64,000 bases of DNA, taken from the NCBI GenBank assembly GCA_946965045.2, contig OX337232.1, positions 3,100,001 to 3,164,000 on the forward strand, read 5' to 3'. Position numbers and translations under genes: made by a program. The notes under the pieces are model-generated. The model ran no database searches, was not told the origin of the DNA, and was given only the letters and a program-made list of their open reading frames with translations. Numbering within the stretch: the stretch's first letter is position 1; the number at the start of each line of letters is the position of its first letter. This DNA comes from Epithemia pelagica (taxonomy: Eukaryota; Protista; Bacillariophyta). This document shows positions 2,887 through 21,269 of this stretch, piece after piece.

Positions 2887-3889
2887 AAGATACATCACCT
2901 ATCAACGCTATTAGTGCAACAATGACTACCTATTATACACAAAGCAGCTTTGAAGGACAATGACATAGAGGATGAAGGTGGACCATCCCATGCTTCTCAA
3001 CTACCGTTGTCTCATCATACAGAAACAGCGTGGAGGCGAGATGGATCCTCTTTCCATGGCAACGACGTGAGTTCCTATGGAAGTGCTCATGAATGGGGTC
3101 TTTTGTTTGGTCTGGTTGTCGATGTGGCTTCAACATGCACGAGCAAAGTCAGACTTCCTACTATTAGACATACTAGTAATTTGTTGATTTCACCTTGTTG
3201 AATGTTTTTTCTAGCCTTCTTCTGTTCAAGACATCCTTTATGCTTGGAGTTTGTAGAAGAGTAAATTTCCATTTTACCATTTTACCAAGGATTCTTGCTT
3301 TCGGGATACGATCTTTTGGGCCGAGTGTTGCATGTCTTTGGATGAGAGCTATTTCAAAAAAAAAAGAAACAATCTCCTTGCGGACGGCTCATCCAAAGTC
3401 TCGGAGGCTCACATGCCATCAACACAAATCCTGTAACGGTCCTCCTGATCGGTGAAGAAACTGATCCAGTGTGCGGGCGAACATATTGCTCTCCACAAAA
3501 GAACTTCTTCTTCGCCCCGATGGAACCTGGAGAAAGGAAGGTTCTCTCCAACATTTGGTCTCCTTCATGGGATTGTTGTGTCGTACCTTTCCGTGCCTTT
3601 ACCGAGGCTAAGTACCATAGTTCCGAATTGGGACGACAGCAAGCCACGTAAAGCAAAAGCAAGGTGAAAAAGGATTGTGTGTGAACAGTGGATAGCATTT
3701 GGGGGATTGGATGGATGCAAGCGCGGAACAACGTTTTGGAGCATTCGAACAGATTCTTGCAGTCGCTTTCGGGGAAATCATGATATGATTCTTTTAGGGA
3801 ACAGTACGTTACCCTCAGAGATTCACGATTTTGGAGTTGTCGATTTCAGGAGCGCTGGCTTCGAAGTGAGGATCAACAAAAGATTAATC

Positions 3890-4828
3890 TCACGGCAAAT
3901 TGTCTTTCGTTTGATGCTCTTGTGGTGGTTGTGTCTTGTCGCTGTTGTCCGAGCATGGTGCGGCCGCACTCGTCGTAGGTCCCAAGGTCGAGGAGGGAAG
4001 AAGAACGGCCAGGTATCCATTGAGCAAGGGATCTTGCGTCAAGACGGTGGGTGTCAAGGACGAATTCACTTCGAGAATGGTGCCCCAGATACCCGCGTAC
4101 AAGGGGACCATGATGGTAGTGGACGACGAATCCTTGTCATCCTGCTGGTTGGCTGGTCCAATCCCAATACGAGCCAAGACGGTGGTGGGTTGTACCATGC
4201 CGGGTGGCAATTGGGTATCGTATTTTCCTCCTCCTTGTTTGAATTGCTTTTGTTGTTGTTTTTGCAATTTGCTTTGGTGTTTTCGTTTTTGACTGGCACT
4301 TTGGTTCGCCACCGGGGCGGCCGATTGACACCATTCAATGGATTGAATGGCCATCCTGACGGAATGATTGGTGTGTTGTGGTGGTGGCGGTCGTTGGAGA
4401 GCCTGCGCAATGCGAGCTCCGGCCGTGACCAGGACCAATCCATTGGCATGTTGATGAAGGACTTGCGATGACGAATCCTCCTCCTCCGGATTGTCCACAG
4501 TCTGGTGGTTGTTGTCGTTCTTGTTGTCGTTTGTCGTTGTACCGAGCGTCGTGGAACAAGAAGAAGAAGAAGCCTCCAAGGATGATGGAAGGTGAACCCG
4601 ATAGGATTCTTGAAAAAAGGAATGCGGTGTCCCCGGACGTCCCGAGGAAGAAATGGGACTGTAGTACGCATCTACGTGATGTGCTGGTGCTGGTACTGAT
4701 TTCGTGGAATCCTCCTTGGTTGGGTCGTCGGGGTCCAATCGTGGTCGTTTGCGATTTGTGGAGAAAGGATTGGTGGGAGAAGGAGGAGGAGCCGCGGCAT
4801 TTGGTTCGTTGGTTTCTTCCTCCTTCAT
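3890..4828 (-). CDS. ABITRAM/FAM206A (Simiate)-like protein, glycine-cleavage-H-like fold
   Basis: VLHQHANGLVLVT ... VQPTTVLARI ... LYAGIWGTILEVN ... LTQDPLLNGYLAVLLP matches the FAM206A/GCV-H-like pattern. Confidence 0.7.
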   Translation of the reverse strand: MKEEETNEPNAAAPPPSPTNPFSTNRKRPRLDPDDPTKEDSTKSVPAPAHHVDAYYSPISSSGRPGTPHSFFQESYRVHLPSSLEASSSSCSTTLGTTTNDNKNDNNHQTVDNPEEEDSSSQVLHQHANGLVLVTAGARIAQALQRPPPPQHTNHSVRMAIQSIEWCQSAAPVANQSASQKRKHQSKLQKQQQKQFKQGGGKYDTQLPPGMVQPTTVLARIGIGPANQQDDKDSSSTTIMVPLYAGIWGTILEVNSSLTPTVLTQDPLLNGYLAVLLPSSTLGPTTSAAAPCSDNSDKTQPPQEHQTKDNLP

Positions 4829-5269
4829 GGTTTGTCACGGTCGTCCTTTTTTCGTTCTTGTTCTACTTGGAAGAATGCAACGACGAGAAGAGCGTCAAGA
4901 GATCTCCTCACGACAGGAGAGAGAGAGAGAGAGAGAGACTACCAAGACGAGAGAGATGTCGTCGTTATGGCAAAATGTCTTTTTGTTGTAGTGTCATGCA
5001 AACAATTGCGCTTCAGCGTTCCAAAATAAATATTAGTATTTTTCTCTTTCAATTATTAATGTATGGAGAGATGGGTTGTGAGAGTCACGTTTGGCGGTCG
5101 CGGAGTTCGGCCATCCAGGAACCACACACACCATTCGTTCCATGGATCCATCGTCGACGACTCGTCCTCCTCTTTGAATATACCACCATTGCCACTGAAC
5201 GCACGATCCAAACAACCGCAGACGTGTGTGATTGTTGGGAGCCACACTGAAAGCTGCGGCGCTGCGCGA

Positions 5270-7072
5270 ATGATTGGACGACTGCTTCTGGTCGTTTGGG
5301 GGACAACCACAACCACAAGGACAACCCTTTCGTTCAACGTTCCACAAAACATCCTCACTGGACGACAACCGTTTGTGCGTGCCGCATTTGGTTCGACGTT
5401 GATACCCAATATCCGTAGAAGCAGCAATTCCAATTGGTTTCGTCCGAGCAGTTGGCAATCATTGTTATTTCTTCCAAGAGCCGGCACGTTTGCAACAAGA
5501 CCAGGACCGGATTCGTGCCTCCCAACAAGAACCACCACATCCCTGGCTTGCACAGCAAGCGGAACCACTGTTGCTGCAGCAGCCAACGAATCGTTTGTCA
5601 CTTCTTCTGCTTCTTCTTTTTCATTTCGCCGCCGTACCAACCACACCCTTGTCATGTCGTCGTCGTCGTCATCGTCGTCGACCAGTGGCGGTGCTCGTCG
5701 CGTGGGTCTGTCGGACTTGGAGGCGTGTGGGGCCCGATTGCGGGCCGGCGACTTGGTGGCCTTTCCGACGGAAACCGTCTATGGATTGGGTGGTCATGCC
5801 TTGTCCGAGACGGCCTGTCGCAAAATTTTTGCCGCCAAGGAACGACCCTTGACGGATCCCCTCATTGTCCATGTGCACGACCCTTTGACGGCTCTGGGCC
5901 TCTGGGCGTCGACCCGCGTCAACACGATCGCAGAGGAGGAGACGACTACGACCCAGGACACTTCCACCACCCAACCTTCAGTACCAACCAACGACGACGA
6001 TTCTTTGGAAGCTTCCATTTTGCAGTACTTGTGTGACGCATTTTGGCCCGGTCCCTTGACGATTGTGGCTCGCGCGGCACGGGGGCAAGTTCCCGATGTG
6101 GTCATGGCCGGGACGGGCTTTGTGGCCTGTCGAAGTCCCCGTCACCCAGTCGCCCGTGCACTGTTGCAAGCCGCTCAAGTCCCCATTGCCGCTCCCAGTG
6201 CCAACAAGTTTGGTCACGTGTCACCCACCACGGCGCAACATGTCTGGGATGATTTGCAACACGAAGCGTCCGTCTGGATTTTGGATCCGGATCAGCAGTC
6301 TGTGGAGACTGCTAATAGTTGCGATTCCTCCAATCCAGCAATGGACACCGTGCCTCCCGCACCGCAACAACAACAAGAACAACAACAGGTGGGCGTGGAA
6401 AGTTCGGTGGTCAAACTGGAAATGGTTCCACCCCCCGACAATGACAATCATAAAAACCAATTACCGGTGGCGCGCTTGACCATGTTGCGACAGGGTGCCA
6501 TTTCCGCGGGGCAATTGCAAGACGCCTTGCACCAGCATGCTGCCACTGCCACTACAAACAATTGGACTATGGATCGCATTGAAGTAGTGGCCCAAACCCA
6601 AGCCATGTTGTCTCAACACGTGTCGGCCGTGAGTCCTGGACAAACGCTGCGTCATTACTCGCCGCATGTGCCGAGCTTTCTCGTGTCGGCTCAGTGTCAA
6701 CCATCCCGCAATCACGACAATGACACGGACGACAGCACTCTCTCGGCGGCAGACCAGGACATTTTGCAAACGGCCGTTGTGATTGATTATGGCCAAGCCT
6801 TGGGGTCGTGGAAATCCGTGGCCTTGGCCTATCGCGATTTGAGTCCCAGCCGCAGTGCGACGCAGGCCGCCCAATCCATTTACGATACCTTGCGATGGGC
6901 CGAACAAGTTCCGGGGGCGGTGCGCATCTTGTTTCCCATGCTCACTGCAAAGGACGACAATGATGAGGACGATGAACCCACCAAGGCCTTGTTGGGAGCC
7001 GTCCAAGATCGATTGACCCGAGCGGCCAGTGGCAAGGTCGTGGATCAACTGAATCAGGCCGTCTTGCCATGA
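5270..7072 (+). CDS. SUA5: Threonylcarbamoyl-AMP synthase (YrdC + Sua5 C-terminal domain)
   Basis: GDLVAFPTETVYGLG, FAAKERPLTDPLIVHV, FWPGPLT, IAAPSANKFGHVSPTTAQHV, GVESSVV, SPGQTLRHYSP. Start is ATG 5270 (with presequence) or 5654. Confidence 0.93.
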   Translation: MIGRLLLVVWGTTTTTRTTLSFNVPQNILTGRQPFVRAAFGSTLIPNIRRSSNSNWFRPSSWQSLLFLPRAGTFATRPGPDSCLPTRTTTSLACTASGTTVAAAANESFVTSSASSFSFRRRTNHTLVMSSSSSSSSTSGGARRVGLSDLEACGARLRAGDLVAFPTETVYGLGGHALSETACRKIFAAKERPLTDPLIVHVHDPLTALGLWASTRVNTIAEEETTTTQDTSTTQPSVPTNDDDSLEASILQYLCDAFWPGPLTIVARAARGQVPDVVMAGTGFVACRSPRHPVARALLQAAQVPIAAPSANKFGHVSPTTAQHVWDDLQHEASVWILDPDQQSVETANSCDSSNPAMDTVPPAPQQQQEQQQVGVESSVVKLEMVPPPDNDNHKNQLPVARLTMLRQGAISAGQLQDALHQHAATATTNNWTMDRIEVVAQTQAMLSQHVSAVSPGQTLRHYSPHVPSFLVSAQCQPSRNHDNDTDDSTLSAADQDILQTAVVIDYGQALGSWKSVALAYRDLSPSRSATQAAQSIYDTLRWAEQVPGAVRILFPMLTAKDDNDEDDEPTKALLGAVQDRLTRAASGKVVDQLNQAVLP

Positions 7073-11099: not shown

Positions 11100-11625
11100 A
11101 TGGCGCTTGTGGTAAAGTCATGGGGAGAAATCCAAAACATTCCCAACTATGAAGAAGTAGCTGGTGTCCTTTTGTTTCGAAAGTAAGTCAGTCTTTGCCT
11201 CGTGTCCAATGATGCAGTGTCCGATGTCCAGTTTCTAACTGCAACCTTTGTCTTTTAGAATTTTTGAGGTCGAACCGGGAGCTCAAGCATTGTTTGAGTT
11301 TGGCAACGGACATGCCCTTGGTGAAGAAGAACTCTACAAAGATCCAAGCTTTCTTTCTCATGCGAGAACAGTGATTCGAATGGTCAGCACGGCCATTGGC
11401 CTCTTGGAAAAAGGGGACATGGATTCTCTGATTGGGGCACTCAGGGACTTGGGAGCACGGCACGCGTCTTACAATGTGTCGCAAGAGCACTATCCAGTCG
11501 TTGGGGAAGCTCTGATAAAAACATTGGATGCAGCACTCGGGGAAGCCTTCACATCAGATGTAAGAGATGAATGGCTCAAAGTTGCCGATGTAATATTTAC
11601 CACAATGGCAACCACATGGGGCTAG
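11100..11625 (+). CDS. Single-domain globin (3/3 fold), 2 exons
   Basis: Exon 1 11100-11182 (MALVVKSWGEIQ..., A-helix SW); GTAAGT intron 11183-11258 with CTAAC branch site; exon 2 IFEVEPGAQALF (CD1 Phe) ... LGARHASYNV (proximal His F8) ... HYPVVGEALI ... W. Confidence 0.92.
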
Positions 11626-12394
11626 AACTACTATCGTGCACATCGCTGAGAATTGGATTGCTCCATGCTGACAATATCCGAGGCGGATGGGAAATCAGTA
11701 ATGGACTGACACGGCTGTACGGGCTTACGGCCGACGCGTGTTGCGAAAGAATGTATCATATTTGTTGCTACCAGGTCTTGTTGAATAAACACAAGCCGAA
11801 GAACAAACAACGCCTATGCTGTCGAGCTCATCGATCCAATATGCGAAAGAGCTGCAATGCCTATATATACAGTAGTGTTCATTACGATTGTCTAATCCAT
11901 TCCATCAGTTCGAAGTTTACAAAAAGTTGAGCAGAGCTATGCTCTTGTGCTTGGTCTTTGACGATCAGTGGCGTCACTGAGCCCTATCTCCCCTAGCAAG
12001 GTCGGTAGGGGAGTCTTGAGTCTTTCCAAATCGTGCAAGGTGGCCATAATCCCCCATTCCCAATCAGAAATCCATGATTGGCGGTGGAATTACAAAACCG
12101 TGAATCCCCCAAAAGTTCTCCCATCATCCATTAGCCCTAATTTATAAAACAAACTTAGGGATATCGGAAAAAATTACCGGACAGAAGTCCTAGAAATCTT
12201 GATGATCAGGGACACCCGGAAAATCTTCACACGCGACCAATCAAACAGAATTGTAGAAATTTCATATTACAGTACAATGATCTTAAGTATTCTTGAGAAA
12301 ATCTAACGGACGCGCATGCATGGATGGGAAGTAATCTACTTAAGGATTTTGCACGCACGCACAGCACTATGAAAATTCACATCTCATGTGAAGA

Positions 12395-12445
12395 AAAAAT
12401 TTCTTCACATCGTCTTCACATCGTTTTCACATCTTCTTCACATCA
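12395..12445. repeat. Left subterminal CTTCACAT array
   Basis: ttcttcacatcgtcttcacatcgttttcacatcttcttcacatc: four copies with ~11-bp period. Confidence 0.85.
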
Positions 12446-12588
12446 TGTTCGAATGACCTCTTCTTGTGAAACAAGAAGCATAATCAATTGATGTTACTTC
12501 GTTTAGGCGCAACTGCCCAACAGACACCCATGCAACAAAAGCAACAAGGACAAAAGGTATCTCGAGAAAGAACCAAGAGCAGCAGAAG

Positions 12589-14286
12589 ATGTCAGAAGAA
12601 GGATGATCATGGGAGTCCCTTTCGTTGCTAGGCAACGACGATAACGGAAACTCAGACCATGACAGAGAGGATACAGATGGAGGACAGCATGGAGGCAGAT
12701 TGCAGGTGATGCATCGGGCTCACTCGGACCCATTTCCATCCTTGCACCTCAATGGCGGAAAACTGGAAAGAACACAAGGCCACGGTGGTTCGTCCGTGCT
12801 TTTTCAAACTGCCAATTTTGCCATTCTGGACGAAATCAACTTTTGGCAAGACAATGATCAATGGTCCGACTTGGAGGAGGACAATGACGAGAAATCTCAA
12901 CCAGAGGAGTACCAAGACGAAGAAGAAGAAGCCAAAGAGGAGGATGAAGCGAGTTTTGGTATGGATTGGTCTCCGCAAGCGAGACATCCCAACGAACTTT
13001 GCATAGCCAGGAAACAGATTGAGATTGCTAGCAGCAACTCATACACCAACGAGACCTGATCCTCCAATGACGAGATGCCGTTGGACGAAAATAGTCCCTG
13101 TCAAAGTCGTGAAGCATCTAATTTCACCCTCCATCACATTATCGAGAAAGCTCCCTCTTCCCCCTTCGTGTCTACCAAAGACAAGACATTGAAAAATCCG
13201 GAGTCAAGGCATGGGAAACATGACTGGATAGCGTTTTCCTTGAGTGTTTTGTTGTTGATTGCACTTTCGTTGACATGGCAAACGTTGTGCATGGTCTATT
13301 CACCCTCCTCTTCGCTCACGGATGATTCAACAGCATCTCGTCCAGATTCCTTGGCTATGAACCAACCCAAACCCTTCAATAACACTACAGAATCATCAGA
13401 TACAGAATTGACCTCGGCTTTGCCAACAATGATGAATGAGGGGAGCAACACAGAATCCTCTCAACCCCATGTGTTTACCAGCGTTCTCCCTGACATATTC
13501 CATTCTGAATCAAGAAGACCCAGATTGCAGCTTACAAGGGAAAAGTCTCAGGGTACCTCAACGTCATGGAACAGCTCATCATCACTGTTGCAGCGGTTGA
13601 GGACACCCGCAAGAACTCATCAATACTGGGACAACAGCATCGCACAAAACAAAAGTACTCCAAGACGAAACGTCAAGTCCGCTTTCGTAGACCGTGGGAA
13701 CTATCCTGTGCCTGATGAGTTGGATGATACAGAACCGGACTCAAATTCTTGTTCCAGTCTCTTTTTGTCTTCCAGCCGAAACATTATTGCAAACAGTTCC
13801 ATCGGTCTTGCGACTCGACTTGCGTTTGTGACCTTATCCATGAGACCACGGAGAGAGTCTCGTGCCTTTTTATTGGCGGATGAATGGTTGGGGCAGTGTG
13901 GCCATGGCGATCGAATGGGAGGTACGTATGGACGCTCGTTTGGAGTTCGACCAGTCACCTCCTGTACAAGGATGGTAAACATTCGAGAGCAAGAGAAACC
14001 TGTGAATCTCCCGACGGATTCAGAATGGACTCGGATGTCGAAGGATGTGGACGCATCCCTGCAATTCGTCAATCAGTTTTGGAATCCGGAGGCACTGGAA
14101 CGTGGTAGCTGGTTTATGGACGAGGAGGGAGAAGAGTTGCGTCCTGAGGACAATATTGTCAAAACATTTTGTCGAATGGTCGGGAAGAAATGGCCTCGTG
14201 TCAGTCTCTTTACGAGACATGACAAGAGAGTCCACAACACGCTAGGGACCACAACGGATTCCATTTTACAATTGATGGACGAATGA
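12589..14286 (+). pseudogene. Decayed host-like gene inside the TIR element: acidic/Ser-rich protein with one predicted TM helix
   Basis: ATG 12589 (MSEEG*SWES) and ORFs 12625-13059 and 13075-14286 are in one frame, interrupted only by TGA at 12604 and 13057. Hydrophobic stretch IAFSLSVLLLIALSLTWQTLCMV. No family recognised. Confidence 0.55.
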
Positions 14287-14568
14287 TTGACTTGCTTCAG
14301 ATCTCTTTGCACGGAAACCAGGATACTGTGGAACTTTGAGACACTTTTGAGGGGAATGTTTGCTTAAAAGGAAACAGCAAAGTATGCTCATACTCCTTCT
14401 TATACCTGATAGGATTAACTCTGGAGACAAAGCTCTGTTATTGATTCATCATACATCGTCGATTGGGGCAACACTACGGTTCAAGACTTCCCATGAACTT
14501 AGTTGGGCATGTATCTGGTAGCAAACATGTACAGCTTCTAATAAGCTTGGCGGAGGTTATTCATCTAT

Positions 14569-15003
14569 TTATACAAATGCGAGACCGATCCATACGGTTC
14601 CAATGACCATGGCGAGTACTGAAGAGCAAAGACTAAACTTTTGTGGAATATCGGGGCGTTGAAAGAATTGACCCGCCTTTCGGGTGCCTTCACCCACCAA
14701 AGTGGTGACAATGGCCATGGCCGCAATGGTTCCAGCGGCATAGGCCAACAAAAAGGCCAAATTTCCACTCCACGTGGCCACGGCCAAGGAGGGAGCCAGT
14801 GATGGTGCTCCGTCCCAGGAGAATCCATGCAACAAGCCGTTAAAGATCACGGCTCCTTTGGTACCACTCTTGGCACCAACATCGGTCGCCGCCGCCGACA
14901 AGGATTGTGGCATGACCCCACTAATTTCCTCCTCCCATTCACGGGCTTCCCGAATTCACAAGATGCCAATCACAATGAGCGACAATCCCAAGGCAATTTC
15001 TGT
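14569..15003 (-). pseudogene. C-terminal fragment of a NiCoT/HupE-UreJ-like high-affinity nickel transporter
   Basis: TEIALGLSLIVIGIL*IREAREW...NGLLHGFSWDGAPSLAP...FLLAYAAGTIAAM...GEGTRKA. In-frame TGA at 14958-14956 where Gly is expected; the N-terminal half is absent. Confidence 0.7.
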
Positions 15004-15107
15004 TGAGGTCCCAGTTCCGGAGGATCAGGAAAACCAGCAGAACTAGTAACTACTTTGTTTAGTCCTTCATTCTCCCATTTTTCTTTTAGACTCTCATTTT
15101 TGTAGTT

Positions 15108-15290
15108 TTCACATCGTCTTCACATTTTCACATCTCCTTCACATCTTCTTCGCATCTTCTTCACATCGTTGATGTGAATTTTCACATATTCATGTGAATT
15201 TTCATATGAAGTGAGAATATTCCTATCGCCACTTTTTTCTTCACATGACAGATGCGAAATTTCACATCGTCATGTGAAATTTCACATGAT
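15108..15290. repeat. Right subterminal TTCACAT/ATGTGAA array with palindromic units
   Basis: About six direct ttcacat copies, then palindromes gatgtgaattttcacat, catgtgaattttcatat and catgtgaaatttcacatg. Confidence 0.85.
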
Positions 15291-17521
15291 GTTTCCTTTA
15301 AGTAAATGCGCACGCCGTCCTGGTTGAACTCATTAGGTTACTTATATAAAAGAGAAGACATGCGTGATAACACATAGAATACTTAGATGGGGGCTACAGT
15401 ACTATGCGAACTTCTGAAATGTCAACCTACAGTCCTCTGCGAAGATTTTCCGGGTGTCCCAGTACCTAACCTAGCGCCACAGCACAGGATCGCTGTACCA
15501 TAGCCTACGAGCACAAGAAGTGACCAGTTTTACTCAATTGTTTGGTGGACACTAGTCCGGGTCATGATAGCGCTGTATGTAGCAGAAAGGAATTTCCCAA
15601 ACCCTCGCATCACGCTTCACTGGACATACCCATGAGGGAGTACGTGTCATAGGACGAGAAACCGCAACGACAAGGACCCACAGGTGCTTTTGCACAAGCC
15701 TTCGCTTACATCAAGATGCTAGTACAGAGGAGAGTTCAATGAGGAGATGCTGGCCATCAAGTGGAAGAGAGAGGGCATGGTTACCGCTGGCATTACGATT
15801 CATGAGGCATAGGAGAACCACGACAATGACATGCGGACAGCCGCAGAAAAGGAACCACCAAGACAATTGAATGGATCCCAATGGATTACCATCATGGATG
15901 TTGGTCGATGGAAGCTTCTTCTTTAAGCAAAAACATCAACTCCCCATACGAGACAATGGCAGCGACAATGACAACGAGCGCAACAATCAACTCCACCGAA
16001 CGTACAAGACTATGTCCAAAACAACAATCAACTGCAGCAACAATGAGAAAAAGAGATGAGGCTGGTATGCAATGTGCCCTTGGCTCTTCAGGCTTGTTTC
16101 CCCAGCTTTCCTACCAGAGCCAAAACAACAACCTGATGAAGATGAAAACAACAATCAACTACATGGATGAGGCAGAAACACTCCAGAGAACCAATGCAAC
16201 AATCAACAACTCCTTGTCCAAACGCAACAATCCAATAATTGATTGATGCCAAAGAGGAGCAGCAACACAACTACAAAAGACGACCAGACAAGACAACAAA
16301 ACAAAACCTATGATAACCTATGATGCCTGCTGCCACTGTTGACAGCACTACTGCTCTCGCCAAGACGACAAACACAGTTGGACACTCAGAGCCCCGGTGT
16401 CGTCCCTAATAATGAGATGACGAAGACCAGGGAAGCACCCTTGTCTCAAGGCGACGAGGTCTTCGTTTTTCATTCTTCATGCCAAGACACAAGAGGCAAG
16501 AGCAGCACGCAGCACAACCTCTCGTCTCTGCCCTCTCCACATTACGGGAATAAGACTAAGATTCCTTCTTTCCTTTTCTACTTATACCTAGTACTACACC
16601 CTACATACGTGGCTTATGTACTACGGTGGACGCGCTGTCCTATAAACTTTTGGGATGATACATCATGCGCGAAGTGGGGTGAGGACACAAGACCAAAGAC
16701 CACGACCTGGACGTGACTACTCCTTCCTGGCACGACTGGAGTATAGTCGCGCAGAGCAAACTACCCCTTGGAGAATACTGCCTGAGCCGATACGGACCCT
16801 AGATCAATACATGATGCTCCAAGGGCGGAAAGGCACATGGAATACTCCTATGATCTTGCTGTGGATCGACCTACGATAGGTAGGCATTCCTGTGTGGTTC
16901 TGGATCTGATCAGAACACCACATGTGCCCCAAACAAGACAAGGAATTGTATACTAGTGTGGCTTCCCCCCTGGCCACGATAGGAGGGTTGAAGTACTCGC
17001 CTACTAGAAGACAGGCTGGCACTTTTATCCATCGTGTAGTATGTCTCGCTGAGAACTCCCCAATGATTGCGGAGACGCATAACATTTGGAGGTTTTCGTT
17101 GCGTATGAGCTTAGGAGTAGCATACGCCAAGACTTCGTTGGAAACTACCATTTGCGCTGAATCTACCCAGTCCCGGGACACAAATAGATAAAGTACATAT
17201 GTTTCACTAATCTTTACAGCTTCATTCTAGCCGCCGTTGCCCTGAGCTGTTGGCAAGGTGTCTCTCGTATTTTTCTAAGTCGTTTGTTCTGTTTTCTCTA
17301 AAAGTAGCATGTGTTCGTTGGAACAGAAAAGAAAAGATCTTTGTTGATCCCTCACTGTTGTAAATTTTTGGGAAGACCGCGTTGCAGAAACAACGGACGG
17401 GTTGAGTGTTAGCCAACGCACTATCCATGACATCTTCAGCCATGATATTCATCAAGACTCCCCCAATAGCTATGATTATGGCTTGCTCAAGTCTTCACGG
17501 GACATCCTCTTAGGAAACCAT

Positions 17522-18946
17522 TCACTGAACGAGAGTGCTTCCACTGTGGTTATTGTGAATGTCGTTCAAAGAATGAAGAGGGTCCAGTAACAAGGAGTCG
17601 TCATCCAATAGAGGGGGGAGAGAGTCATTGGATTCGGCCGGGGGGAGAGAATCATTGGATTTGGTAGCATGAACCAAAGACTCAGTTGCAGGAGCATGGG
17701 TGTCGTCTTCTTCTTGAGGACTGTCTTCTTTGGGACTGTCTTCCATGAGCGCCCCCAATCCACCCATATCACTTGAAGTACTTGACTCGCGATGAAAAAT
17801 GCCATGCTTTGGTCGGCCAAAGTCAACAACACGTTCCTCGGACTCTTGACGGGGAATGATATCTGTCACTGGAGACGCATGGTGCAAAGGTGATAGACCT
17901 GATTCCAAAAAGCCTTCGTTTTCAAACGGATTGACAAAGTCTTCGTTGCTCCATTCATCGTGCGCATCAATCTCTGGCAATGCTAGTGAGTGTTCACGGC
18001 CTCCTCCTTGAGTCAAATCCAACGGAGGAGGAAGACCGAACACAGGATGAATGCTCCTACCATTGCTTGGCGGAGTATCATCTGTAGGGACAACCGTGTG
18101 TCCGTTATACTCCAACCGTACGCGCTTGGTTGGAGGTTGCACAACAAAGTCAAACGGATCTTCGTCTTTGACAACCGCTACTGAAGTGCTGAGATGAGGA
18201 GAAAGCTCAACGTGGCTGGTGTGAAGACCGGCCACGGAATCCAAATGAAGAATCGCTTCGTCTTCCAAAGGCGATGCTTCAATCAACGGTCTCTTGATTC
18301 CTCGTGATCCAGCAGAGGTGACTGCGAATGGAGTGGACGTTATGGGCCCTGACGGTACACTTGCTGGTGTTGCAATGTGTGACAAAGGCCCCTTCCGAAT
18401 GGATTTTCGGCCAGACTTTGTCTTGGTAGGTTCTGTTTGGTGAGCAGCTCGAATCTGGGGTGCCCCTTCGCGAAGGGCTTGGCTGGTTTTGGCCATGATT
18501 CGCTCATCATCTATTTCGACCCACCATCCTCCAGTGACTCCTCCCGTTGTGTCCTTTTGCAAAAAACGGCCTGGTGGCTTTTGGTTGCGCACCAAGTCAA
18601 TAACTTCCTGTGCGACCCGTGACTTTTCTACTTTGGTAGGTGCAAGGTTGTATTCATTCTTTCGGACTCGAACCCACTCGCGAAACTGTACATTTCCCAT
18701 GTGGGCGTTGATACCTCCCCCTCTTCCACTCAATACGTCGTGCTCATGAGGTGTTCGGATTCTTGTGTAGACTCCTTGAATGGAGTTAGAATACATAGAG
18801 CCATTGTTCGATAAAAGCATCATTGTGTTGTTGTCGTTTGTTGTTGTTGTTGTTAATAAGTTGTTGTTGTGTTCAATTTTGTTATCTTCCTTTGCAGTTT
18901 CTTGCACTGCACGTCTGCGTTTTTTTGTGGACATGATGATTGCCAT
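17522..18946 (-). CDS. DUF6824-domain protein (diatom-expanded putative regulator)
   Basis: TPHEHDVLSGRGGGINAHMGNVQFREWV...KSRVAQEVIDLVRNQKPPGRFL...WVEIDDERIMAKTSQALRE, followed by a disordered tail. Start taken at ATG 18946. Confidence 0.88.
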   Translation of the reverse strand: MAIIMSTKKRRRAVQETAKEDNKIEHNNNLLTTTTTNDNNTMMLLSNNGSMYSNSIQGVYTRIRTPHEHDVLSGRGGGINAHMGNVQFREWVRVRKNEYNLAPTKVEKSRVAQEVIDLVRNQKPPGRFLQKDTTGGVTGGWWVEIDDERIMAKTSQALREGAPQIRAAHQTEPTKTKSGRKSIRKGPLSHIATPASVPSGPITSTPFAVTSAGSRGIKRPLIEASPLEDEAILHLDSVAGLHTSHVELSPHLSTSVAVVKDEDPFDFVVQPPTKRVRLEYNGHTVVPTDDTPPSNGRSIHPVFGLPPPLDLTQGGGREHSLALPEIDAHDEWSNEDFVNPFENEGFLESGLSPLHHASPVTDIIPRQESEERVVDFGRPKHGIFHRESSTSSDMGGLGALMEDSPKEDSPQEEDDTHAPATESLVHATKSNDSLPPAESNDSLPPLLDDDSLLLDPLHSLNDIHNNHSGSTLVQ

Positions 18947-21269
18947 GACTTCGCTTTTTCTTAGCTGTTGTTGTTGCTCAACAAAAAGAAGTGATACGCT
19001 GTGCTGGTTCGATGAGAAAGACAATGTCAAGGTAGACTCAGAAATGACAGGTGGAGTGTCTTTGCTGACTGTCAGGTGGAGTGTCTTTGCTGACTGTTTG
19101 GAGACAGAGGGCAAGTTTTTAGGTGATTCGCGTTTTGTGGGCAAACCGTGTGATGAACTCCTTTTGACGCGGTGTCGTTTCTTGCCGTGTTTCTCCTGTG
19201 TACACTCCGCACCCGTTTGCGGGTGCTGATGATGATGGGTGGTACCATGTCTGCCTGCGCGTGGGGCTAGAGGTCGCGGTGAGGAACGTGGGGGAACGCG
19301 GTTTCGAACCAACCAAATTGTACCTCTGACGTTTTCTGAGTTCGCCTTCGATTTTATGACCCTCCCAAGCAGCTTGTGGGAGTTTGCGGAGGTGCTTCTT
19401 TCTGCTTCGCGGAATTCTATCGAAGTGACTCTGACGATGCAATTTCAAGCATGACCAAAGTGTTCCGGAGGAACGGATCGCGGGAATGTATTTGCAGGAA
19501 CTAGATTTTGGAGCGATGGGGAATTCGATTACCTGTGTCTGAGTCCCTATCTTCGTCAGTCACGGTGTCGTTCCGGAGTACCGATGCCGAACCAGGTGAC
19601 GGAGCGGAATGCGAAGCTTACTGTGTCGAATCAATGACATTTTCTGACACGTGACACCCCAGCGCATAGCGTCTCGACTCAATAGGTCATTGACACACAT
19701 ATTCGCGGAGAACATGATAAGTCGTGTCTTGACCTGGAAGACAGATGCCAGTGCGTCAGAAGCCACTTCTCATTTCTGAGCGGGGCCCAGCAGATGGAAG
19801 ATGGAGAAAGAAGAGAGCCCAGTCATCCCAGAAGCGATGACGCAATCTCCTCCCTCTATCTCGCGTACGCCCCACCATCTGTCAAACCCGAATCGGAAGA
19901 TGAGAATGCGAATCGACTGGCTCACAGGAAACGAAGCTTCGCGCACGCACGCCAAACTTACAGATCATTGTACGGAAATCGCAAGCCATTCCAAACGTGA
20001 CGTCATCTCGTTGCGTCGCGCTTTGCCAGGACATGCGCCCCGAACTCGGAACAGGACCTCCATCCAACAAATGGGGTTTTTCTGGGAGAGCTACGGACTG
20101 TTTCTGAGACGAACAGGACAACGGATCATCTCCAAGGGAGCAATGCATCCAATCTACTTAGGAGTAGCTACTCCATTCCTATTGCATTGGTGGTTTCTTT
20201 CATGGGCGGAAGTTGATATCGAGCTAATAGGTTTTGATGAGGCTGGATTTCGAAGGTTCATGTCGTTCATCATTATTCTTTACAGTCTTCCGTTTCATAG
20301 ACCGCCAAGTCCATCCTCAGCTCTCTGGATCATTTGACATGAACACTTTCAACTCAAGCGAGTTTGTGACGTGCGCCTTTCGCAAACAGCAGGTCTTTCT
20401 CTCGGTAGTAGCATCTGATTGAAGCAACCCGTGGTTTCCCGGTCCATCCATTTGTTGCATCTTTCGTCGCTCTAGATAACTAGGCTACGACGAACGGGTA
20501 GCATCATAAGAAAGCTTCTTGGATACTCGATGCATCCCAGAAAGAGACTCACGAAAGGCATCCAAGAATGGCGCCATTCTAGGTGAGGTGATCCATAAAA
20601 TTTCATCTTGTCGTCGACATTGTCTCTCGGACGAACAACCTCCATTCTTGGCATTGGAGAGCAGCCACATGCATGCCAATGAAAAAGACGTGCCGAGGAG
20701 AACCAGACAGCGCCAGAATTGCAGTTGGAAGTACGGCGTGTGCTCCTGAAACGATTCCTTGAATAGGTCACACAGTGACCTTTGCTTATTGCATAGAAGC
20801 ATGGCCGCCGCCTCTTGGTTTGCTTCCAATGTAGTCATTGTGGACCCTCTCTTTTTCCAGGAGGGCGATGCATTTACCACCTCGCATCTCGTACGGTCAT
20901 GGCGATGAGCTCGCTCAGATGAGCTAGGAGGCGTACTCTGGTTGGTAGGGTAGATTAGGTCATGGATCAGTCCACAATTCATGTCAGATTTCTGCACATT
21001 GTGGCAATGACAAATAATGGCGGTCCAATAGGAGACTCTGTTATTGACAAATCTCATTCTTGACACCGTCGAATTGTCGATACACACAAGGTCTATCCAT
21101 ACCATGTAAGAGAAATGAGGCTGAATTGATTGGCGTAAAAGGAAGCAAGTTTTTCATGCCTGAGAATACCACCGAGAACTGAACATCAAACGTCTACAGA
21201 GTGTTGCATCCATTCGAGACCTACTCAAGAAAGGCGGTGTGGTCCAAGATCTCTCCTCGTTGCAAACCA

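Follow-up and report, generated by a model that had tools for sequence, protein, structure and literature searches.

Pack-MULEs are the classic case of gene-capturing transposons. Pack-type derivatives of PIF/Harbinger elements have been described from both maize and rice (Gisby & Catoni 2022, PMC8903248), and within the PIF/Harbinger-ISL2EU-Spy superfamily (PHIS) it is by a 3 bp CWG duplication that the NuwaI group, reported mainly from animals, is defined (PMC4482050). Here we analyze a 64,000-nucleotide stretch of the genome of the diatom Epithemia pelagica (assembly GCA_946965045.2, contig OX337232.1, positions 3,100,001 to 3,164,000 of the forward strand), hereafter the window, and report that its segment 12210-15459 is very probably a non-autonomous cut-and-paste PIF/Harbinger transposon of the CWG-duplicating, NuwaI-like kind that carries a dead copy of DNA from contig 11 of the same genome. 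Nearly all that has been worked out on gene capture by cut-and-paste transposons comes from plants, and our literature searches returned no report of gene-capturing DNA transposons, Pack-type elements or transduplication in diatoms; a preprint on diatom MULEs mentions Pack-MULEs merely to exclude that class. An earlier annotation of the window (the original prediction) had proposed a gene-capturing Pack-type element with terminal inverted repeats (TIRs) at this locus, and the ends of the element, its empty sites, its helper copies and its donor locus all favor that proposal.

Insertion site and target duplication

Eight paralogous empty sites prove that window 12210-15459 (3250 bp) was inserted and that a 3 bp duplication was made. 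These sites read ...GATGATCAG|TACCTAACC... with one CAG each, lacking the whole 3250 bp together with one CAG, and the trinucleotides at 12207-12209 and 15460-15462 are thus the left and right copies of a CAG target-site duplication. In all eight of the repeat copies that were fetched, the left flank of the window copy, a single CAG and the right flank of the window copy follow one another directly (...CTTGATGATCAG|TACCTAACCTAGCGCC...). No target-site duplication had been recognized in the original prediction; placing the boundary one base further in reveals the 3 bp CAG, and the comparison with empty sites that it suggested as a check now defines the duplication. A hAT-like reading, with CAGGG/CTGGG termini and an 8 bp duplication, was rejected, as the 8 bp flanks do not match and the empty sites show 3 bp.

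The target of the insertion is a 1.29 kb repeat with at least nine near-full copies (84-90% identity), and copies of this repeat served as the empty sites. Its left part lies at 12128-12209 (+) and its right part at 15463-16666 (+), both outside the element. The left-flank stretch 12119-12209 has at least 13 further genomic copies in which homology stops exactly at 12209, the left-end matches of the repeat falling at 13 other places with 86-98% identity, and the right part has at least nine copies that are 84-90% identical over query positions 1-1204.

Terminal and subterminal repeats

The inverted arms at 12209-12231 and 15438-15460 are 23 nt long and 96% complementary, the first 20 nt being perfect, so the inverted termini described earlier are confirmed. 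Within the element, the left TIR (GGACACCCGGAAAATCTTCACA) occupies 12210-12231 (+) and the right TIR 15438-15459 (-). The original prediction had extended these into about 200 bp of degenerate long TIR, of which the 20 perfect bases stand; beyond them only short islands match.

Subterminal arrays of short motifs are present at both ends, as had been noticed before. The left array at 12376-12444 (+), recognized as a direct-repeat family and from motif counts, is built from TTCACATC motifs at 11 nt spacing, and the right arrays at 15108-15290 (+), recognized from direct and inverted repeat families and motif counts, contain TTCACAT/ATGTGAA motifs. The 758 bp of the element ends hold 18 of the 25 TTCACAT/ATGTGAA occurrences in the 64 kb window, mostly 11 nt apart, and the arrays have mostly the same orientation at both ends and are therefore direct rather than inverted.

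The only parts that the element shares with the short and long copies described below are a 300 bp left backbone (12210-12509, +), which aligns with the left end of the long copy C8a (locus L049) and with the short copies, and a 456 bp right backbone (15004-15459, +), which is 84-89% identical to all family members in BLAST comparisons and homologous to the final ~440 bp of the copies that have a transposase. The left array of the window copy lacks 92 nt and 11 nt that are kept by a sibling copy on the same contig. The coding interior of the parent element has been replaced and only the two ends are kept; an open reading frame (ORF) listing and a Pfam search show no transposase match in the interior, confirming what had been predicted.

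A family of nine elements

Eight further loci in the genome have both ends together. A search for the 20 nt terminus allowing up to three mismatches gave 15 genomic occurrences compared with 0-1 for a control with the reversed pattern, and these resolve into nine elements: the window copy, the sibling (C5:1272122-1276290), four 1.6 kb copies (contigs 4, 2, 13 and 5), and three long copies, C8a (C8:3158284-3163894), C8b (C8:1762332-1791125) and C6 (ending at C6:1528702). Six of the nine carry cargo and three have a DDE_Tnp_4 transposase. The original prediction had suggested looking genome-wide for the termini, for copies with different cargo and for a transposase-coding partner; the termini do recur, the 1.6 kb subfamily carries part of an ORF from contig 18, and transposase-coding partners have the same ends.

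With the element read as GGACACCC...GGGTGTCC, the flanks of its complete copies can be compared directly. The window copy and C8b are flanked by CAG on both sides, and the contig 4 copy, C8a and the 1.6 kb copy on contig 5 (C5a) by CTG on both sides; the contig 13 copy has CAG and CTG, and the contig 2 copy CAG and CCG. An identical CWG is thus present on both sides in five of the seven complete copies, the remaining two pairs differing at the middle base, and CAG or CTG stands at 12 of the 14 ends.

The long copies supply the link to a transposase. C8a is 5.6 kb long with CTG on both sides, has the same ends as the window element, and contains four ORFs, one of which (429 amino acids) matches Pfam DDE_Tnp_4, the PIF/Harbinger transposase family, with 36.5 bits. 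This match stops at position 134 of the 158-position profile, and the corresponding ORF in C8b (L064:1501-2757), which is intact at 419 amino acids, gives 48.6 bits (cut-off 24.8) over profile positions 1-157. Because the C8b homologue extends through profile position 157 where that of C8a stops at 134, the C8a gene has a frameshift near codon 370 (L049:1762-3051 compared with L064:1501-2760) that removes the last catalytic region. The C8b transposase has the usual C-terminal region and the second ORF of this copy is open (554 amino acids), in an element swollen to 28.8 kb by nested insertions. C6 has a stop in its transposase, a split second ORF, and no left end. C8a is the only structurally tidy long copy, and the intact transposase is found instead in the swollen C8b.

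The three further ORFs of C8a, at L049:1361-1795 (-), 3209-4858 (-) and 5009-5714 (+), match no named family. One of them, a 549-amino-acid ORF, is convergent to the transposase; next to other Harbinger transposases in this genome it has partners that are 24-32% identical, and a strand-rich C-terminal domain is conserved among them. A word search with it returned only its own cluster, and its AlphaFold model is unusable (predicted local distance difference test score, 44.5). The last C8a ORF has left a trace in the cargo-bearing elements, in that its stop-proximal end (...PEDQENQQ*) is kept in every non-autonomous copy, including the window copy (~15000-15046).

Because copies with DDE_Tnp_4 share the ends of the window element, assignment of the family to PIF/Harbinger (PHIS), with a CWG duplication and NuwaI-like by this target, is supported by sequence comparison. 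The original prediction had left the superfamily unassigned. A CACTA reading, which a 3 bp duplication and subterminal repeats might suggest, was rejected because the partner transposase is DDE_Tnp_4.

The cargo and its donor locus

The DNA between the two backbones (12510-15003) is captured host DNA, and gives a single BLAST alignment to contig 11:622485-624984 (2538 columns, 92% identity counting gaps). By substitutions only it is about 95% identical, ranging from 92 to 97% by segment: 97.4% in the leader, 94.8% in an orphan ORF, 91.7% in the intergenic spacer, and 97.2% in a membrane-protein gene fragment. It comprises the complete orphan ORF, the spacer, and the 3′ end of the convergent membrane-protein gene, with the order and orientation of contig 11 kept, and the match to contig 11 ends precisely where the transposon backbone begins. 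At contig 11 the two convergent genes are intact and continue past the capture breakpoints, and the genome-wide end and terminus search found no family ends on this contig. Because the transposon has only part of a gene, the rest of which is present nowhere but at contig 11, transfer was from host to transposon.

The orphan ORF copy is at 12590-14286 (+), its parent having 568 codons from the first ATG. The original prediction described it as a stop-interrupted, host-like ORF and treated the cargo as gene fragments of the kind that Pack-MULEs shuffle; the stops and the host origin hold, but this piece is the whole parental ORF with a 78 nt leader rather than a fragment, and the cargo is a single contiguous genomic piece, not one shuffled from several loci. 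The parental genes, which were to be sought elsewhere in the genome, are intact and lie together on contig 11.

The second piece, at 14569-15003 (-), corresponds in translation to the final 144 codons of a membrane-protein gene that is conserved in diatoms and whose relatives are named as nickel transporters or exporters by their sources, in accord with the earlier description of the 3′ half of a NiCoT-like transporter lying tail to tail with the first ORF. The last exon of the parent has 209 codons and reaches 65 codons past the capture breakpoint. It has 532 relatives across diatoms, the closest named one being from Epithemia clementina (92%), and source names include 'high-affinity nickel-transport family protein' (Seminavis) and 'nickel/cobalt exporter' (JGI, Phaeodactylum); its Atlas neighbors are nickel/cobalt efflux and UreH/NicO clusters. 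In Pfam the parental exon gives only a sub-threshold DsbD_2 match (19.3 bits, cut-off 24.9), and there is no NicO match in Pfam and no NCBIfam match for the parental protein when its exons are searched separately. The protein may thus be called NiCoT-like on its source names, not on a family test. Its upstream exon (L062:5551-6661 (-), contig 11) starts with a signal-like peptide ending ...LEIMAF|AP, which we take to resemble the ASAFAP motif of diatom plastid targeting.

A sibling copy and a second cargo

The sibling at C5:1272122-1276290 lies 1.84 Mb from the window copy on the same contig. Its cargo is that of the window copy, 99.1-100% identical (98-99% for the element as a whole), and stands between unrelated flanks, the homology ending at the element ends. 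The same cargo at another locus shows that the cargo-bearing element moved after capture.

The sibling has acquired changes of its own. Its six outermost left bases are tgtgtc in place of GGGACA (L045 end, C5:1272122), and its right end (C5:1276290) abuts GGGACACGGGGG / GGGACACGGGGGTCCACACGCCGCGACC in a palindromic junction, GGGTGTCCC|GGGACAC; these anomalies may reflect aberrant transposition or repair, or insertion beside the end of a related element. An 822 bp TIR element is nested in the sibling cargo (L045:1961-2782; C5:1273582-1274403), with GGGTCGGTCTTATCG... ends, GTGAAATTTCAC subterminal motifs and a 3 bp TGA duplication, and the window and contig 11 are its empty sites. It has at least four full copies elsewhere at 99% identity and so was active very recently, and many more places match its interior (positions 156-550) at 75-94%. 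That these 822 bp belonged to the original cargo was rejected, since they are a separate multi-copy TIR element absent from the window and contig 11, and the right flank was considered as a relative of the interior of the 822 bp element and gave no match.

The four 1.6 kb copies are 93-98% alike, and have an 810 bp interior that is unrelated to the long copies and 74-90% identical to the middle of an open, single-copy 541-codon ORF on contig 18 (L075:617-2242 (-); C18:2228616-2230241). This parent ORF has Thr/Asn/Pro runs and no Pfam match, and an N-terminal LLLGDSWAES motif that is presumably reminiscent of SGNH/GDSL hydrolases by resemblance only. On the left, the backbone breakpoint of these copies lies about 58 nt away from that of the window copy, and on the right about 17 nt away, indicating two independent captures by the family. 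Descent of the window copy from the 1.6 kb subfamily, or the reverse, was rejected, as the left backbone kept by the window copy is ~58 nt longer, and the right one ~17 nt shorter, than in that subfamily. The contig 18 cargo is older than that of the window copy.

Junctions and the route of capture

The left cargo junction, ~413 nt in from the left end, reads ...TTTAGGCGCAA|CTGCCC..., and the right one, ~440 nt in from the right end, reads ...TTTCTGT|TGAGGTCCC.... Both are inside internal transposon sequence with microhomology of only 1-4 nt, and no relic of an inner terminal repeat or of a duplication was found at either one. The cargo would have been taken up while an excision gap was being repaired, through template switching or filler-DNA capture, or else in a comparable end-joining event. 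An alternative is that two family insertions flanked the contig 11 segment and were mobilized together as a composite whose inner ends were later lost, a route that has been proposed for maize Pack-PIF clusters (PMC8903248), and in keeping with which the backbone points where the interior gives way to cargo lie within 17-58 bp of each other for the two cargoes. However, no family ends exist at or near the contig 11 locus today, and junctions in internal sequence that show no inner-end relic would need two extra deletions. We therefore regard the composite route as unlikely, and gap-repair template switching is favored over fusion of neighboring insertions because the junctions are internal and no inner terminus remains.

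In Harbinger biology a partner protein binds subterminal repeats and recruits the transposase. By this scheme the window element would be mobilized in trans by the DDE transposase of its family together with accessory proteins, one or more of which would recognize the termini together with the TTCACATC arrays, whose motifs repeat once per helical turn.

State of the cargo genes

Judging from their coding sequences the cargo genes are dead. The copy of the orphan ORF is interrupted by two stops, one at parental codon 6 (GGA>TGA, 12605-12607) and one at codon 159 (TGC>TGA, 13057-13059), both of which are also present in the sibling and thus predate the last transposition, and the membrane-protein fragment, which agrees with its parent at 142 of 144 residues, has one GGA>TGA stop. 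The ratio of nonsynonymous to synonymous substitution rates (dN/dS) of the orphan ORF copy relative to its parent is 0.8-0.9 and near-neutral; with stops in both genes, we conclude that they are pseudogenes. The window copy of the orphan ORF belongs to no Pfam family.

A frame of 403 codons is still open at 13075-14286, as the remainder downstream of the second stop, and all indels of the window copy relative to its parent are multiples of three, so that one could imagine recruitment of this 403-amino-acid ORF, or of a chimeric transcript, to serve as a new gene. This is a good deal less probable even than the composite route: the two nonsense mutations are in both copies, the sibling frame is broken by a private 1 nt deletion as well as by the 822 bp insertion, dN/dS is near-neutral, and by a rough estimate an open 1.2 kb frame at such divergence is not unlikely by chance. 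That the locus is not mobile at all, being an ordinary convergent gene pair with inverted repeats on either side or a segmentally duplicated contig 11 locus, has only the retained contig 11 gene order and orientation in its favor and is practically without probability, being refuted by the eight empty sites without the 3250 bp and one CAG, and further contradicted by contig 11 homology that ends exactly at the backbone and by ends that belong to a nine-member family including transposase-bearing copies.

Two ORFs near the element have Pfam matches, one at 11248-11625 (+) with a Globin match (63.6 bits) about 600 bp upstream of the insertion, and a 596-amino-acid ORF at 17522-19312 (-) with a DUF6824 domain (93.8 bits).

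Discussion

The identification of window 12210-15459 as a non-autonomous PIF/Harbinger element with a captured cargo has to be set against several observations that do not fit it comfortably. The length of the duplication is not set by sequence alone, because a 1 bp duplication of A with GGG...CCC termini gives identical strings; 3 bp is preferred because this is the rule of the superfamily, and because the related 822 bp element in the sibling has an unambiguous 3 bp TGA duplication. The sibling is imperfect, its terminal 6 nt on the left being altered and no duplication being readable. Among the three long copies none was shown to be structurally and coding intact at once, so that present-day mobility is no more than a possibility. 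No Myb/SANT partner was detected among the family's ORFs, and the 549-amino-acid ORF has no Pfam, NCBIfam or PDB sequence match. Finally, Pfam and relatives searches with the orphan ORF gave neither a family nor relatives, and it may not be a real gene.

We have in hand the donor locus, junctions resolved to the base, empty sites, a sibling, helper copies, and a second independent capture, and the case is therefore a substrate for asking how capture happens. One can also ask if expression of the captured pieces occurs, or if they contribute to silencing of the parent genes by small RNAs. Because all six non-autonomous members carry host sequence, from two captures, and none is a plain deletion derivative, one may speculate that for the Harbinger-type elements of this diatom the capture of host DNA is a habit and not a rare accident, although we consider this doubtful; if true, transposon-mediated gene duplication and shuffling would be a regular part of diatom genome evolution.

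Like classical PIF/Harbinger elements and the Tourist MITEs, the family described here has a DDE_Tnp_4 transposase, duplicates a palindromic target of 3 bp, and includes short non-autonomous derivatives in which both ends are retained. It differs in that the target is CWG rather than TWA, and in that the derivatives are 1.6-3.3 kb long and contain host DNA, whereas the MITEs are miniature products of internal deletion. In its 3 bp CWG duplication, confirmed by paralogous empty sites as was done there, and in its Harbinger-kind DDE transposase with further ORFs beside it, the family resembles NuwaI (Han et al. 2015, PMC4482050). However, NuwaI is mainly an animal group, diatoms being unmentioned in that report, and its second ORF is Myb/SANT whereas the partner ORFs here match no named family. 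The CWG-targeting (NuwaI-like) Harbinger branch, described mainly from animals, would be extended to diatoms by this family.

The Pack-PIF and other Pack-TYPE elements of maize and rice are likewise non-autonomous TIR elements that share their ends with an autonomous family, with an interior of host-gene DNA for which there is a parental locus, mobilization after capture, and cargo that differs among members. The window element differs from Pack-PIF in its host, a diatom rather than a plant, in its CWG target in place of TTA/TAA, and in its very small family of nine elements, six of them cargo-bearing. The cargo also differs in kind, being one contiguous 2.5 kb piece with a whole ORF and the end of a gene, where Pack-PIF elements have short exon pieces from several loci. 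The window element shows that the gene capture known from the Pack transposons of plants occurs in a diatom too.

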